From assembly GCA_020536535.1 (NCBI GenBank), contig JAHLWZ010000857.1, positions 1-64,000 on the forward strand: DNA of 64,000 nucleotides, in the 5' to 3' direction. Every line of letters starts with the position of its first letter. The stretch's first letter is position 1. Source of the DNA: Pelomyxa schiedti. Its lineage: Eukaryota > Protista > Evosea. This document shows, piece by piece, positions 24,591-33,375 of this stretch. The translations under genes and the position numbers were made by a program. The notes beneath the pieces are model-generated. The model searched no databases. It was not told the DNA's origin and worked only from the letters and a program-made list of their open reading frames with translations.

Positions 24591-24660
24591 ACGTTATAAA
24601 ATCAAACACTCCAGCACCTGTTGCCTGTTGTAAAAAAAAAAATTGAACAATTACCCGGAG

Positions 24661-26072
24661 ATGGGGGGAAACCATAGCAAAGCCAAAAACAGCAAACACA
24701 GACCCACAAGTGAGGAGCCGAACAGCCACGTAGAAGCAGACCACACGCCCAGCACAGAAAACACATCCGCCGCGACTCCAACTTTGTCAACGTCGACATC
24801 AACAACAAGCGAAGGGGCGGAGGCAAATGATGGGATCCATGACACTGAACACGACGCCGTGAGTGGTGGGAGTGAAACTGAGCCAGGAGATGGAGAGAGC
24901 ACGACTCCTGCTCCGCCACCGCCGCCTCCTCCGCCCCCTGTTCCAAGTATGTCTGGCTGTTCGTTTCTGTGTTATGGGATTGTATTCTCACTGACTTAAG
25001 AGAGTTCTGCCTCTACTACTAGCAGTAAAAGTGCGGGAAGCCGCGGGAAGGGAAAAACGGCTGAGGAGAAAATGGCTCTCTACCAGTCACATGCAAATAA
25101 GCTTCGGATGGGCTCTGTTGGGTCCCCTTACATGTTGACTCCTCATACTCCCGCAACTTGGAACGCACTTGTGATCACTGACACCCATTTGTGTAAAACG
25201 GTGAGTGAACTCCATAATACCTATATGTAACCCCAATATATAGCGGTGAAACATTTGTTCACACCTTCACAAATATGAAACTCAAGGATAAAAGCTATTT
25301 CTCGCGAAGCAACCAAGATAAGGTATTTTTAAAAAGAGGTTGCTTATTCCCATATATTAACAACTATAAAGATGTTTGAAACACTTGGGAGAGTAATTAC
25401 TTCTGTGTCCCCATCAGAAATCATTATCCTTGGAGATGTTTTCCATTCAGTTAGTCAAAAGGAAGCGGACCCAGTTTGGTGTCTGTCAATCATAGAAAAG
25501 TTTCTTTCCTTTGGACTGCATGCAACTATAATAGGAGGTTTACAGCTTTTCGATGACTTATACCATTAATAAAGCACTGCAGGTAACCATGACCGCTGGA
25601 TGTTTGAAAAATGGGGAGACCAGTGGCAAAAAAAGCACCCCAAGCACTTAAAAGTTGTCAGGGAAAAACTGATGCTGGCCCAAGACCGTGCTGAGACCCA
25701 TAAGTTTTACTTCACCCACGATGGTAACTCCCCTTCATTCTCTCCTCACACTTTTAACACGCTCCTCACCACACAGGAGGCACCGCACTTTGGTTGAGCC
25801 CCCTACAAGAAGTCCCCTTTGTTCTGGGGCAGAGAGCCGCCCAGGGCCTGCAAGCCGGCGACTGCCTCTGCACCGGCCACGTGCACCGCACCCACGATAT
25901 GATGGAGGCTCATGGCTGTGCCTCCTTGGGCTCGTGCACAGGCTCTGGGTCATCATTCCACTATGCAGTGTTTACTGAGGCCCAACAAGAACCAGCTTCT
26001 CTGGAACCGGGGAGTGCTGGACGAGCAACACCTCAGCAAGGACTCCTCACCATCAAGTTCTACACGGCTTGA
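24661..26072 (+). CDS. Calcineurin-like metallophosphoesterase with putative N-myristoylation (multi-exon)
   Basis: MGGNHS start, poly-Pro linker, motifs ITDTHL, LGDVFH, AGNHD, THDG, GHVH. Confidence 0.8.
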
Positions 26073-26807: not shown

Positions 26808-29800
26808 ATGGCCAGCGCACCAAAGACCACAACACTGAGATCCAGTGACGGTTGCGAAGTGGTTGTGACGAGCACACCATTGGACACACCGACATTTGTA
26901 CCGGGGGACCCTCTGGGCTACGTGTACAAGGGAATGAAGTACAAGGACAAGGTGGCGTACGCGGCTCTTTCGCGCATGCAATCTGCTGCTGCTCCTACTT
27001 CTGCTTCTGCTTCGGCAAATTGTGGGACGGTGGCTACTACTGCCGAAAAGGATCTGTCGTTCTCCTCGGTGAAGGCGGAGATACGCGATTTTGGAGGGTA
27101 CAAGTGCGTGTGGATCAGCCACGACCAGTCATTTTTCAACGGCACTATTGGATGCGTGGAGGGCGAAGTAATGGCAAGGGCATTGGAGAAGGCCTACGAG
27201 TTGAAATTACCTTTGGTTTTATCTTGCTCGGGTGGTGGTTTACGAATTCAAGGTACGGTTTTGACTTTTTTTTTCCACTTTCCACTCTCCACTTCCTCCT
27301 CTCTTCGTTATGAACTCACTCTCTTTTCACAGAGGGTTCTTTTCCTATTCATGAGATGGCAAAGTACTTTACCATTATGAGCAAACTGAAAGATGCCGGC
27401 ATGCATCTTATACCCTCAATAAATCTAGTAACAAAACTTAGGAATTCCAACAATTAGTATCTTCAATAATCCGTCCCTTAGTGCAGCCACTGTCTATGGA
27501 TCGGCTTCAGATATAACAATAGGTTTAAGGAGCGCACGTATTGGAATTTTCGAGGAGCTGGAAATTCTTGAAACAGTATTCAAAGGGGATTATGCACCTT
27601 ATGATGTCACTTGTCCGCCTGCTTTTCAGACATCCCAATTCGTTTATGACAATGGCAGGCTAGACATTATCGTAGACCACGAAAACAGTGAATACTTACG
27701 CAAGTTATTACACATAGTTTCTGAGGGGAGGAGAGTGTGGCACGATACACCCAGATCTGAAATCAAGGCAATGCTAGAAGCAAAACTTGCTGAGCGCCCA
27801 TTAGTACCTCCCAGGATGGAAGTCGATTTTGATCTTGTTAAACTCCGTGATATGGGGAGAATACAAGTACAAGATTGCCTTGACCTTCTATTTGAGGAAT
27901 TCGTAGAGTTACATGGAGATGGAAATAACAGGTCAAATACATGTACCCGTGGAGGAGTTGCGCTTCTTAATGGACTCCCTGTGATGGTTATTGGTACAGA
28001 TAAGGGCCATACCCCAGAATTGATTGTTCAACGTAACTACGGAATGGTAAGCCCTGGGGACTTGCGCTTTGCTCGTAGGATTTTGCATATTGCTAGGCGA
28101 TGGAGATTCCCCTTGATTGTTCTGGCCGATTGCCCAGGAGCCTTGCCCACCTTTGAAAGCGAAGAAGGTGGTGTCTACAAAATAATCTCAGAGCTAAATC
28201 TTGGAATGACAAAGAGTAAAGTTCCAGTTATATCCTTCGTTCTTTCCGAAGCTGGGAGTGGTGGTGCCGCATGTTTATGCAATCATACCGACTCGCTTGT
28301 TATTCTTTCAAATGCCTATTTTGGAGTTATGACACCAGAGGCAGCAGCGTCAGTCCTTGGAGGAAGCACACCCAATATGGAACAAGGGGAGTTGATCAAC
28401 AAGATTATGAGTGCTCTGCAATTCCGGGGCCCCCAGCTTTTCAAGATGGGTCTGGTTGATCAAATCGTGCAAGAAGGAGAAACCATAAAAGAAACCATCG
28501 ATCAAATGAGAGCCTGCTTCTTTGCAGCTCTTGCCCCGCTCGTAGAGTTATCTCCTCAGGAACTGGTGGAAAAGCGCTTTCACAAATTCCGACCTTTACG
28601 TAAATCACTTCAAGAAGTGGGTGGTGAAGAAATGGAAGCCTTAATGAAAGAGTTCCAGAATGCTCTTAAAGCTCCACCACCTGCCAGACCAAGTACCCGA
28701 GGAAAACCTACCGGGCCTTCTAATGGAGTCACTACTGCTACTCCTGCCTATATGAGGTTTTTATCTGAAATGACGCTATTGGGGCTCAAGAAGTTTGACA
28801 CTGAGGGTAACGACGATGCTAAAAATGTGGAAGCTATAGAGGCCAAGCTTCCGAAGTTCGTGTTTGAAAAGCAAGACCTAGATCCCAGCTACCCAACCAT
28901 AAAGGCAATTCTTGACGGTTCAGGACCAGCAGCAGTTTCACAGTGGTTGATATTGCAAGGTCCCCACCAAGTTTTCTTCTCTGACACATCTTTGTGTGAC
29001 GGCCAGCAGTGTTTACTTTCTGGCCACGTACGTACACGCGATCTACTTGCTGTAGCAGATATCTTTTCACACACAGTGCTTGTAAACAGCAGCTCTCTTT
29101 TCTCCCTAGAGATTTGGGGGGAGGAAGTATTCCACTCATGTCTGACTACTCTTAATGAAGATCCTTGGGAACGCCTGAGACTCCTCAGAGCTTCACTACC
29201 ACAACATGTGGCACTTCAAATGGTGTTGAGTGGAGATTCCCTTGTTTCATTGAGTAAACAACCACGAGACGTAGCTCGTATATTTATCACAGCGGCCGCC
29301 AGGAATGGGATTGATGTGTTTAGGATTTATGACAATTTCAACAACGTGTCCAATATGATGGAAATTGCAGCCATCGTAAATGAATGCCAAAAAATTTCTG
29401 AACTGACAATCTGTTTCTGTGGGGACTTTGAGAACGAAACAGAGACAGTCTACACCTTGGATTACTATAAGGTTCATTGACTATTTGTTAACCAAGTGCA
29501 CTGACTTGTTACAGAGGTTAGCTAACTCTATTTCAAAAACGTGTGCCCATATTCTTGCCCTGGAGGACATGGCTGGAATTGTTAAACCGTCACATGCAGC
29601 TCCACTCCTGGCTGCTCTTCGGGAAGCTTCCGGCAACCGACTACCTATTCACTTTCATACCCATGACACCACTGGTGTTGGGCTTCAAACCGTTATCTCC
29701 ATGGTAGAAGAAGGGTGCGAAATCGTTGATGTATGCGTTCCCCAGTGTATGGCTGAGACCCCTTCACAACCATCCCTCAGCGCCCTCGCTCTTACTCTTA

Positions 29801-31041
29801 AATGCATAGCTTGTCCGCGAGAGGTTCAAGTAGACGCACCTTCACTTGCAGAGATGGACAGTGCCTGGAGGGGAATACTCCGCGCTCCATGGTATTCCAA
29901 GTTGAACGTACACCATTGTCCATCCACAGCTGCTTACAGTCATGCCCTACCTGGGTGGCAGTACAATACTATGTACCGTAAATGCCAGCGAGAACACATA
30001 GAACACCTCATTCCCCAAGTGCTGGTAGCATACAAACAAACCGATTTAGCACTAGGTCGGATCATCAAAGTTACAGCAGTCAGTACCGCTGTGCTGGATC
30101 ACGCCATACACAGTGTCGTTAAGGGAGTGGATGCGACAACCGCACTGTTGGCAGACAAAATATGTCCCATTCCGCAAACTGTGAAGGACATGCTGAATGG
30201 TGTCTATGGAATGCCGGAAGCTGGTTTTCCTGCTGGAATTCTTTCCGCCACAGCCTCCAACCCCTTGAAGCATGGGGCACCACCAGAGTTAGACCTGGAA
30301 AATGTTTCCAATAGGGTCAAAAAAGCTTTCCCCAATGCCCCTACCCCAACTCCTATGGAGTACATCCTGAATGCTGCTCTTTTCAATGATGCCTATCTCG
30401 TTCAACATGCCAAATGGGTGAACCACTATGGTACACTCACGTCGGGAATTCCATCAAGGGCCTTCTGGAGTGGGATGCCGGTGGGGTCGTCAGTTCATAT
30501 CCACAACTACTCGTCCTTATCCGGAAACCACTGCCCACCCTCCTCACTGCTCCCTGCGTACGTCCCCCCCAATCTGTCCCCCTCACTCCTGCCGAGTCCG
30601 TCGCCAGGGTTCCCCACAATTTCTCCCATAGTCCTCATCTCGCACTCGCCCACCCTTTGCCGCTCCCGCTCCCCGTCACCATCACCCATCCCCTCACCCT
30701 GCGTGTCCCCAAGCATACCGCCCGTATCAATCACACCACTTCTGACCCCCTCCATCTTCCCCGTGTCGCCGAAGCTCCCCTCTCCCTGCCTATCTCCCAT
30801 CCCTGTACAGTCCGCGTCCGCTTTAGCCGAAGCCAAGCTTCTGTCCGCAGAGACCCCTCAGATCCTCACTCTGAAGCTCAACAGAGTTTCGCCAGCAACA
30901 CGGACTGGTTCTCGCACAGTCTCGTTCCAGTTGGATGGAAAGGACACTTTTGACTATAATGACGAGGGTCCCCAGGCAAGTATTACTCAAAGCTCATTCA
31001 TTGACATCAGGACAATCCTTTCAAACGTGGGTTTGTTGTGA
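26808..31041 (+). CDS. AccD-AccA-pyruvate carboxyltransferase (PycB/OadA TIM-barrel) fusion, transcarboxylase-like, lacking a biotin carrier domain
   Basis: AccD: GDPLGY..MKYKDKV, HDQSFFNGTIGCVEGE, SGGGLRIQEG, FQTSQFVYDNGRLDIIVD. AccA: FVELHGD, RNYGMVSPG, DCPGA, SEAGSGGA, YFGVMTPE. PycB: LEIWGE, EDPWERLRLLR, NGIDVFRIYD, EDMAGIVKP, IHFHTHDTTG, IIKVT. Confidence 0.88.
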
Positions 31042-31088
31042 GGAGAAAAAAAGGCAGTAAGAAAAAGAAAAAACAGTTTTTTTTTTGT

Positions 31089-33375
31089 CTATGGGAAGTT
31101 GACAGACAAGGCCAAAGGCACAAGAGAATCAGTGACAGCATTTCCCAAGTCAGCCCCCTCTGCTTGTATTTCCGTAAACAAATTACTGAAATAGTGTTGA
31201 TCCTGGATAGAAATTAGCATTGGGAGCACAGTTATGTGCCAAACTTGGTGTAGCTGGTCCTGAATCCCTGTGAGGCATTGTGTGAGTTTCTCTGTGTCTG
31301 GTCCACAATCTGGCAGTGAATCCGCTAACATTGTGTAATGCTGTTGAACAGACTGCAAAATAAACTCAAGGCGGGCAAGTTTCTCCACTTCTTTGGCTTC
31401 AGAAAGGAAAAAGAAATAAGTGTGAACTTACATTCTTCATCTGTAGCTCTGTCCAAGTTCTTACCAAGATTCACTCTGTGAAATCGCGCACGGTTGTCGA
31501 GCTCTCCTTGGTATCTCAATGTGGTTTCTTGGGTAGCCTTTTTTTTTTTGTTATTTTTTCTTTTTTTCACCTTGTGCCAGTAACCACAGTAATGTCTTTG
31601 GGTAATTGGCCAAGAACAGTTTTTTCTTCTTCACAAAAAGCATCCAAATTCTTAGTGCTTTCTGGTACAGTCAAAATGTGTACGAGGAGTGGGAAGAATA
31701 CCAATGAAATCCCTTTGAGAACTGTTCAATGAAACAATACTGTGCCCGGCATGTTTGTCATTGAGGCATTCCTCACAGACAGCACTTTCACAACTTGTGC
31801 ATATTAATGTTATGGCTATGTCTGTATGCACTGGACAGGTAGAGGTATCAGTGACTGTGTGCATTTTTAATGGAAGAGGCTTTATATGACGTCAACGTGT
31901 AGAAAGAATGAAGTGAGTGTTTACCTTGTGGCGTGACCATTTTGGGCCAGAGTGCCTTCTTGCATAACAGCAATCACAAAAAATGAGGCCTTTACAGAAT
32001 GCAATACTGTTGCACGTCTTAGTTCCTTGTGCTGAGTCTTGACAATTAGGGAGATTGCATGACGGGCCACCACTCTGGTTCCCCATTAGGGGCAGAAATA
32101 TGAATTTGAGCTACCAGATATCTTTTCACTTGCTCATTCACTTCCCTGAGCAGCGTATTTTGTTGTGCTGTCGGTGCTTTTTTTTTTAAACAAAAACATT
32201 CAGAAAATAAGACTATACTATTTACAGGTGAGTTCAGCAATTTGATAACAGATAGGACAATTGAAACATCTTGGTGGAGAAGTCTGGCAAGACACGAGGA
32301 TAAGCAGAAATGCGATAAAATATATAGATATTATGTAAAGAGAGACTGAGAATCAAACCTCGGTCACAGGGAATATTGTTAGCATATCCGCTACGCACTT
32401 GCGGCAAAAAATGTGACCACAGGACACTACCACGGGGTCTAAGTACATGTTGAAGCAGCACCCGCACGTCAAGTACCTTGAACCGGAGGTGCCGTTACCT
32501 GCCGAAACAGCCTCATCCGAAAGGAAGACATGTTCTCCTGCCGTAGCCTCGCCCATTCCACCGTGCTTTTCTATTACTATTCCTAGCTCAGTACTCTTCA
32601 CACCCATAAGTGTGCCTGCGCTTGTGCTTGTGCTTGTGCTTGTGCTTGTGCTTGCGCTTGCGCTTGGGCTTGGGCTTGGGCTTGGGCTTGGGCTTGGGTT
32701 TGTGATTGTGATTGTGTTATTTACGTTTGCACTTGCTTTCATCGTGCTTGTGCCGGTACTTGGAACAGGTGGCAAGGCCTGGGAGATTGATGAGAATGAC
32801 GGGCTAGCAGGAACCGTCCTAGAAGTGATGGGCAGCGGGGGCAGAGGCTTAGAGCGCACCACAAAAGCGTCTCCCATCACACCCAGTGCGGGGCTCATGG
32901 GAGTCGCCCTGGGCGCCGCCGCCGGTGTCGGCGGAGACAAGGGCCTTGCAGTCGTCGTCGTGGTCGTCGTCGTCGCCGTTGTTGTCGCCGCTGGTTCTGC
33001 CGGGAAGGAACACAGGGCCGTGGGGATTGGGCGAAGGAGAGCGGGCGGGGACAAGGCCCGCATGGGTGTGCCCGGAGGGTACGGCGAGGGTGAGGGCGAG
33101 GCGCAGGGGGAGAAGGGAGGCGGCATCCTGGGGAGCGCACGGAGGTCGACGGGAGGCGGCATGTCCGCGGCGGTGACGGGGGACCGAGGCGGGGGCGCCG
33201 CGGGGCCCCGGGCGAAGGGGGGCGGCGCCCGAGGCGCCACTATCGCGGGCACAACAACGTGGGGCACAACAGGCGCCACGTAAGGCAGCGGGACAACCAC
33301 AGGAATCGCAGGGGGCCCCTGCTCATTAGCCACTGGAGGCACTGAGGCCCCGTTGCCGCTCAAGTTGGGATCCAT
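31089..33375 (-). CDS. TRIM/RBCC-like protein: Pro-rich N-terminus, RING, B-box1, B-box2, coiled coil (multi-exon)
   Basis: RING CGCC...SCGHIFCRKC...CPIC. B-box1 CNLPNC...C...FCDCCYARRH...H. B-box2 CPVH...LICTSCESAVCEEC...KHAGH. Helical C-terminus. Confidence 0.82.
32620..32697. repeat. Coding hexamer microsatellite (GTGCTT)n-(GCGCTT)n-(GGGCTT)n
   Basis: Tandem hexamers encoding PSPSPS-ASAS-TSTSTS in the TRIM gene. Confidence 0.85.

Follow-up and report, generated by a model that had tools for sequence, protein, structure and literature searches.

A Pelomyxa schiedti paralog of the fused transcarboxylase that lacks a biotin carrier and has probably given up biotin chemistry

A fused transcarboxylase of protists is reportedly the subject of Jordan et al. 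2003 (PMID 12766347) and Barbosa-Cabrera et al. 2012 (PMID 22453500), as relayed by two papers that cite them, PMC8136499 and PMC7985675. In this family an AccD-like and an AccA-like carboxyltransferase (CT) are followed by a pyruvate-carboxylase-type CT, tetramerization strands and a biotin carboxyl carrier (BCCP) domain, in that order. The fused (methyl)malonyl-CoA:pyruvate transcarboxylase is known in the anaerobic protists Giardia, Entamoeba and Mastigamoeba; in Archamoebae and diplomonad relatives, the elongation of fatty acids is believed to draw its malonyl-CoA from this enzyme alone (PMC8136499, PMC7985675). We describe here a member of this family, KAH3745809.1, encoded on contig JAHLWZ010000857.1 of Pelomyxa schiedti (assembly GCA_020536535.1), of which positions 1–64000 constitute the window analyzed. 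The protein lacks a biotin carrier in cis, and the state of its active sites suggests that it probably no longer does biotin chemistry; to the reading that it is a retained, folded and probably non-catalytic paralog of the fused transcarboxylase we assign a probability of about 0.6.

KAH3745809.1 (P0003 in our alignment) is publicly annotated as 'pyruvate carboxylase'. The protein of 1355 amino acids maps without mismatch to four exons at 26808–31041 on the + strand. Pfam identified Carboxyl_trans (1e-24) and ACCA (about 1e-50 to 3e-50) in the N-terminal part, corresponding to the AccD-like and AccA-like domains, as well as HMGL-like and PYC_OADA. Residues 655–1176 match solved pyruvate carboxylases in the PDB (4e-75) and the 5S transcarboxylase subunit (5e-40). 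Because the Pfam scan revealed neither an ATP-grasp biotin carboxylase domain nor a BCCP, and AccD/AccA-like domains are present instead, the protein is not a pyruvate carboxylase; rather, it nests within the fused transcarboxylase family, whose members are its best matches. A HMMER search with exon 4 against 1.84 billion representative proteins returned the protein itself, one relative at 49% identity, and others at no more than 37% over comparably long alignments. A word-index search with the same exon yielded only two distant pyruvate carboxylases, and a profile search with the family alignment added nothing new. The 49% relative, the only one above 40% identity, is KAH3757164.1 (P0004), a protein of 1468 amino acids that is 46% identical to KAH3745809.1; its gene lies in the same P. 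schiedti genome but on a different contig (L001 6001–10646; 4646 nucleotides). In a maximum-likelihood tree, which was built without the third P. schiedti copy, Pelo_58 (discussed later), and without the Entamoeba and Mastigamoeba orthologs, none of which the word-index and profile searches had recovered, these two proteins are sisters with a support of 100/100.

The protein stops short of a carrier at its C-terminal end. Positions 30840–31041 translate as ...LTLKLNRVSPATRTGSRTVSFQLDGKDTFDYNDEGPQ...SNVGLL, followed by the TGA at 31039–31041 at which the public protein also terminates. A profile of the strands that follow the CT barrel, built from 17 homologs, matches the protein in two segments: residues 1156–1184 (30439–30525, +; E 2.4e-7) and residues 1291–1325, LTLKLNRVS...RTVSFQLDGKDT (30844–30948, +; E 7.2e-8), the latter match being LTLKLNRVSPATRTGSRTVSFQLDGKDT. 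In the aligned relatives, the linker that leads to the biotin carrier begins immediately after this second segment; here, only a 30-residue tail remains after it (30949–31038, +), in which neither Pfam nor a biotinyl-domain hidden Markov model (HMM) detected biotinyl similarity. An earlier note on this DNA, made from the letters alone, had recognized TLKLNRVS...RTVSFQLDGK as the strand that normally precedes BCCP, had placed the stop at 31041, and had seen no carrier domain in this frame; each of these observations is borne out, the second by the public protein and by a spliced RNA contig that reads through the region unspliced. The two strand segments are separated by an exonic, in-frame Pro/Ser-rich low-complexity insert of about 106 amino acids (30526–30843, +; GC skew −0.45), which is covered by RNA contigs. 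The insert is a C-rich expansion between two strands of the post-CT sheet, at a place where KAH3757164.1 has only a short Pro-rich stretch.

A carrier was sought elsewhere as well. No [AV]MKM-type motif with plausible surroundings was found in the six frames of the whole window, Pfam at E ≤ 10 reported nothing in the tail or in two alternative frames there, and tblastn with the C-terminus of KAH3757164.1 matched only the post-CT strands themselves. Because variant biotinyl motifs exist among the relatives, the lack of AMKM alone would be no proof, and the HMM search is therefore important: the biotinyl-domain HMM, built from 17 relatives, found no biotinyl domain among 2429 six-frame pieces of all 64 kb, the best value being E = 4 and far from the gene. 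By eye, the last 20 residues (ITQSSFIDIRTILSNVG) bear some likeness to the first BCCP strand of KAH3757164.1 (IRAPISGHIESISVTVG); we rejected them as a BCCP remnant, as the biotinyl HMM gave no match there at E ≤ 50. These searches show that KAH3745809.1 has no biotin carrier in cis.

Contigs of the gene are present in two single-cell RNA libraries. Record 17 of RNA contig set X4 (1566 nucleotides) starts 23 nucleotides upstream of the exon 3/4 junction, crosses it, and is colinear with 29515–31055 without a mismatch or joint, ending 14 nucleotides past the stop; record 10 of X3 is likewise colinear with 30631–31063, with no mismatch and no joint. The mRNA contigs end within about 20 nucleotides of the stop, in an A-rich tract, although contigs cannot locate the poly(A) site precisely. 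Over exon 4, the RNA contigs show neither a joint nor a loose end leading to a further exon. The earlier note had also proposed an alternative GC..AG splice, a 35-nucleotide intron at 30976–31010 (+); it was correct that the resulting frame holds no biotinyl motif, but the splice itself is unused, the RNA contigs being colinear with no joint there, even though the gene does have one true GC..AG intron. Neither a biotinyl-bearing transcript nor an assembly error, the two outcomes that the note had named as refuting it, was found: the RNA contigs are identical to the window across 29513–31063, which excludes an assembly error over that interval.

The remaining gene structure lies on the + strand, and RNA contig joints confirm all three introns. 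Exon 1 (26808–27252) encodes the N-terminus and the first half of the AccD-like CT (Pfam Carboxyl_trans), and an RNA joint confirms its 3' end. Intron 1 (27253–27332; 80 nucleotides, GT..AG), whose joint is present in RNA contig set X3, leads to exon 2 (27333–27398), a micro-exon of 22 codons supported by protein mapping and RNA contigs. The same micro-exon, of 22–23 codons, is present in KAH3757164.1. Intron 2 (27399–27441; 43 nucleotides) is of the GC..AG type; its RNA joint, 27397/27441, carries a 2-nucleotide ambiguity, and the sole register that gives both GC..AG and an open frame is +1. Exon 3 (27442–29471) encodes the rest of the AccD-like domain, the AccA-like CT, a linker and the first half of the pyruvate-carboxylase-type CT barrel, including the altered motifs CDGQQC and MVLSG described below. 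After intron 3 (29472–29514; 43 nucleotides, GT..AG; joints in X3, X4 and X5), exon 4 (29515–31041) supplies the second half of the barrel, PYC_OADA, the tetramerization-type strands, the tail and the TGA. Introns of 40–80 nucleotides seem typical of the P. schiedti genome.

The relatives of KAH3745809.1 carry the domain that it lacks. KAH3757164.1 ends in a biotinyl domain (22.9 bits in Pfam) reading ...LTLAAMKMSVPL..., with AMKM and Lys1424. Biotin_lipoyl was found in all five full-length homologs that were Pfam-scanned (KAH3757164.1, the Giardia muris and Kipferlia proteins, and two others), and the biotinyl segment is present in 17 of 17 full-length aligned relatives (KAH3757164.1 and 16 others). 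Its motif varies: the G. muris protein (P0155) and its close relative P0185 have SAKLD, and the Kipferlia protein (P0009) has GPKIK in place of AMKM, each with the Lys kept. Since all other credible full-length members examined, including the sister, carry a biotinyl domain, the state of KAH3745809.1 is, on this comparison of sequences, one of domain loss. Several apparently 'BCCP-less' matches (P0173, P0175, P0176 and similar) were considered as a natural precedent for fission and rejected as intron-overrun gene calls or fragments; in the P0173 cluster, a full-length protein does have AMKM at its end. Exon loss was rejected as the mechanism: because the BCCP of KAH3757164.1 lies in the same last exon as its CT, the loss in KAH3745809.1 is one of truncation. 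KAH3757164.1 is itself unusual: it has an N-terminal extension of about 120 extra amino acids, and it deviates from the family at 31 of the 161 invariant positions, chiefly in acyl-CoA CT motifs (SGGGLRIQ, GVYQ, SEASSGGA). Its specificity for acyl-CoA may have shifted, or its CT site may be weakened.

The third copy, Pelo_58, is listed as 'PC' in Table S2 of PMC8887013 and is known here from its first ~400 residues, among which no AMKM was found, so that a biotin carrier is unconfirmed. Its N-terminus is AccD-like with a canonical SGGARMQEG, a sequence that identifies it as a predicted fused transcarboxylase, not a pyruvate carboxylase. PMC8887013 places this 'pyruvate carboxylase' in the mitochondrion-related organelle and infers pyruvate carboxylation there. 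The misnomer 'pyruvate carboxylase' is common to Pelo_58, KAH3745809.1 and KAH3757164.1.

We compared the active sites of the two full-length P. schiedti paralogs in an alignment of 18 family members, in which 161 columns are invariant among the 16 non-Pelomyxa sequences. KAH3745809.1 departs from 54 of these columns and KAH3757164.1 from 31; in leave-one-out comparisons most other sequences depart from 0–7, the exception being the N-terminally shortened Kipferlia protein (46 of 207). In the acyl-CoA CT, the departures are mostly common to both paralogs: SGGARMQ is replaced by SGGGLRIQ (in exon 1 of KAH3745809.1), GQSEAIA by GVY..., and GEGGSGGA by SEA(G/S)SGGA. Because both paralogs have them, these changes predate the duplication. 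The Gly-Gly of the AccD-like DPTxGG motif is Ser-Ala in KAH3745809.1 and Gly-Ala in KAH3757164.1.

In the pyruvate CT, the departures are mostly private to KAH3745809.1. The family motif RDAHQS reads CDGQQC in this protein and RDGQQS in its sister, MLLRG reads MVLSG and MLIRG, KDMAG reads EDMAG and KDMAG, GGQ reads GWQ and GGQ, and KVTPSSKxxGD reads KVTAVSTAVLD and KVTPSSRVVGD, respectively. The pyruvate/biotin pocket has thereby acquired the substitutions R689C, R767S, K864E, G995W, P1035A, S1036V, K1038T and G1041L. The position of the carbamylated Lys is Lys in 16 of 16 other homologs and in KAH3757164.1, and Glu864 (codon at 29563–29565, +) in KAH3745809.1 alone. We take the changed positions to correspond to the pyruvate-binding Arg548 and Arg621 and the carbamylated metal ligand Lys718 of R. 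etli pyruvate carboxylase, and the changes in KVTPSSK and GGQ presumably surround the catalytic Thr882 and the biotin pocket in the same numbering. Asp690, His893, His895, the Thr of KVTPSSK and the Gln residues of RDAHQS and GGQ are retained, and would be the counterparts, by our assumption, of R. etli Asp549, Gln552, His747, His749 and Thr882. Conserved positions lost in one paralog only number 28 in KAH3745809.1 versus 8 in KAH3757164.1 for the barrel, 15 versus 6 for PYC_OADA and 20 versus 9 for the AccD-like domain; for the AccA-like domain the direction is reversed (12 versus 22). In each catalytic domain KAH3745809.1 keeps about 40–58% of the family-conserved positions.

In the maximum-likelihood tree, the end branch of KAH3745809.1 is the longest, with 2.05 changes per site compared with 0.56 for KAH3757164.1 (a ratio of 3.7), and no ortholog of more than 50% identity was found among the 1.84 billion representatives. 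The gene is transcribed and spliced, and although each residue has changed about twice, its frame of 1355 codons, interrupted by three introns, is still open. The point of truncation coincides exactly with the boundary between the last oligomerization strand and the carrier. It is from the open frame and from conservation at the level of the fold that purifying selection on KAH3745809.1 may be argued.

We propose that the gene was duplicated in the Pelomyxa lineage, and that this copy would then have lost its biotinyl domain by a truncation inside the last exon, at a domain boundary, and likewise the residues needed for shuttling CO2 between biotin and pyruvate. The altered pyruvate site would be unable to receive a carrier in trans, and so would do no transcarboxylase work. 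Because the loss of the carrier goes together with the decay of the site that it visits, biotin chemistry appears to have been given up altogether, the carrier not having merely moved to another chain. The intact, spliced and expressed open reading frame of 1355 codons, the conserved positions retained and the complete oligomerization strands are the reason for regarding the product as a folded subunit or scaffold that may have been kept, perhaps to assemble with biotin-bearing paralogs. In pyruvate carboxylase, the post-CT strands help build the tetramer, and because they do, mixed assembly with biotin-bearing copies is the most economical role; we suggest a biotin-bearing paralog of the same genome as the partner.

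Several points weigh against this proposal. The metal site may survive, as the Asp and two His are kept and Glu could replace the carbamate; the catalytic Thr is likewise present, as is the Gln of GGQ; and the AccA-like domain holds 53% of its conserved positions, versus 46% in KAH3757164.1, so that some activity is possible. The roles of individual residues are those that we presume from published pyruvate carboxylase structures. Purifying selection is argued from the open reading frame, with no close ortholog for an estimate of the nonsynonymous to synonymous rate ratio (dN/dS), and hetero-oligomerization is something that we purely infer.

The alternative that survives best, although we consider it unlikely, is domain fission, in which the protein remains a working carboxyltransferase, perhaps at the acyl-CoA site only, served in trans either by a free 1.3S-like protein or by the BCCP of KAH3757164.1 or Pelo_58 in a mixed oligomer. 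The bacterial transcarboxylase does use a separate 1.3S carrier, and biotin-bearing paralogs exist in the same genome (the BCCP is confirmed in KAH3757164.1, the carrier of Pelo_58 is not). The oligomerization strands are kept, the acyl-CoA CT substitutions are mostly common to the biotin-bearing sister and need not inactivate, and the AccA-like domain is as conserved as that of KAH3757164.1. However, the residues of the pyruvate and biotin pockets are replaced in KAH3745809.1 only, the AccD-like Gly-Gly has become Ser-Ala here and Gly-Ala in the sister, the branch is 3.7 times as long, and the 64-kb window holds no carrier gene. The earlier note had offered a need for a stand-alone 1.3S-like carrier as one of two options; the pocket replacements and the lack of a carrier gene in the window speak against it. 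Its other suggestion, that the protein works without biotin, fits better, with the qualification that the protein is most likely non-catalytic or re-purposed, and not a working transcarboxylase.

Re-purposing may have gone further, although we hold this to be a rather doubtful prospect and place it behind fission. The copy might have been re-tooled into a biotin-independent oxo-acid barrel with Glu864 as a metal ligand, or into a regulatory pseudo-subunit that tunes the active transcarboxylase. Any new chemistry, which we consider to be just as doubtful, could be that of a metal-dependent TIM barrel acting as a lyase or decarboxylase of oxo acids, or of an acyl-thioester decarboxylase at the AccD/AccA-like site. 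The biotin-independent malonate decarboxylase MdcD/MdcE is a precedent for AccD/AccA homologs that act without biotin. Consistent with such a conversion, Asp690, His893 and His895 are kept, the Lys has given way to a carboxylate (Glu864) rather than to a neutral residue, and the frame is intact in a gene that is expressed. Against it, both pyruvate-binding Arg are gone, the substitutions are spread over conserved positions (54 of 161) and not confined to a few specificity positions, and no ortholog shows the new residues to be conserved.

We judge it decidedly improbable that the gene is an incipient pseudogene, transcribed and still open but functionless. Its branch is the longest in the tree, it has lost both a domain and catalytic residues, and it has gained a large low-complexity insert, all of which favor that reading; however, a frame of 1355 codons with three correctly spliced introns would not have stayed open by chance after about two changes per residue, the truncation lies exactly at a domain boundary, and every domain retains about half of the positions conserved in the family. 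Finally, a mis-assembly or wrong gene model that hides a biotinyl exon is largely refuted and extremely improbable: the Logan DNA contigs of run X1 do break between 30732 and 31029, but contigs from the two RNA libraries, one of them with the upstream splice junction, are identical to the window across this break, X1 record 3 bridges 31029–31375 into the neighboring gene, and no biotinyl-like sequence exists anywhere in the 64 kb.

The neighboring gene is convergent and encodes a RING and B-box (TRIM-like) protein, annotated with 551 amino acids at 31089–33126 (−) (Pfam zf-B_box 3.5e-10, and RING matches). The end at 31089, as given in the earlier note, agrees with both annotation and open reading frame, on which it rests; the last exon (31089–31388) is without an RNA contig. 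The A/T-rich spacer of 47 nucleotides between the two stops (31042–31088) is where the RNA contigs of the + strand gene end, at 31055 and 31063. Minus-strand introns of the TRIM-like gene are seen in RNA at 31662–31701, 32177–32225 and 32284–32358. Across 31089–33375 (−), this amoebozoan gene combines RING, B-box and coiled-coil with long Pro-, SP- and ST-repeat tracts, and an open reading frame at 32353–33375 (−) reaches upstream of the annotated start at 33126. Elsewhere in the window, the open reading frame at 24643–24999 (+) begins with MGGNHSK, which looks like an N-myristoylation start, and ends with a poly-Pro tract and then a GT splice donor; it forms part of a gene annotated upstream, which shows a weak SKICH match.

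The family itself is already known, and GenBank already lists the protein, though under an incorrect name. A carrier-less member of the fused transcarboxylase family appears to be undescribed in the searchable literature; on biotinylation of the Entamoeba enzyme, no open paper was found. At least three copies exist in P. schiedti, each of them labeled 'pyruvate carboxylase' in the public record or the literature, and in metabolic reconstructions a carrier-less copy with an eroded site should not be counted as an enzyme. The locus offers a natural example of a swinging biotin domain lost together with decay of the site that it visits; beyond that, it is of modest importance unless the protein proves to have a regulatory role or a new catalytic one.

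Compared with the fused transcarboxylase of other protists, KAH3745809.1 has the same domain order through the post-CT strands and the same placement in searches and tree, but differs in having no biotinyl domain, replaced pyruvate-site residues, a longer branch and the 106-residue Pro/Ser insert. With KAH3757164.1 it has in common the micro-exon, the derived changes in acyl-CoA CT motifs and 46% identity; the sister, in contrast, still has its AMKM-bearing BCCP as well as the carbamylated Lys, the two Arg and TPSS(R), and has the extra N-terminal extension. The Propionibacterium transcarboxylase (12S/5S/1.3S; 5S: PDB 1rqb and others) similarly pairs two CTs, one for acyl-CoA and one for pyruvate, without a biotin carboxylase, and its carrier is a separate chain, as a carrier acting in trans would be. 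Its subunits are separate, however, and their active sites intact, whereas KAH3745809.1 combines both CTs in one chain and has an eroded pyruvate site, and the 64-kb window yielded no carrier. Pyruvate carboxylase is alike in its CT domain and post-CT strands; KAH3745809.1 has AccD/AccA-like domains instead of ATP-grasp, and no BCCP. The last comparison, with the plant BADC proteins, is functional only. These are non-biotinylated pseudo-subunits of a biotin enzyme, and KAH3745809.1 is likewise a paralog of a biotin-enzyme component that lacks biotin and could exert its effect by joining the active enzyme in a complex. BADC proteins derive from BCCP, whereas in KAH3745809.1 the carrier is deleted and the CT scaffold remains; if it is indeed a regulatory pseudo-subunit, it would be a counterpart of BADC that arose from the carboxyltransferase side.

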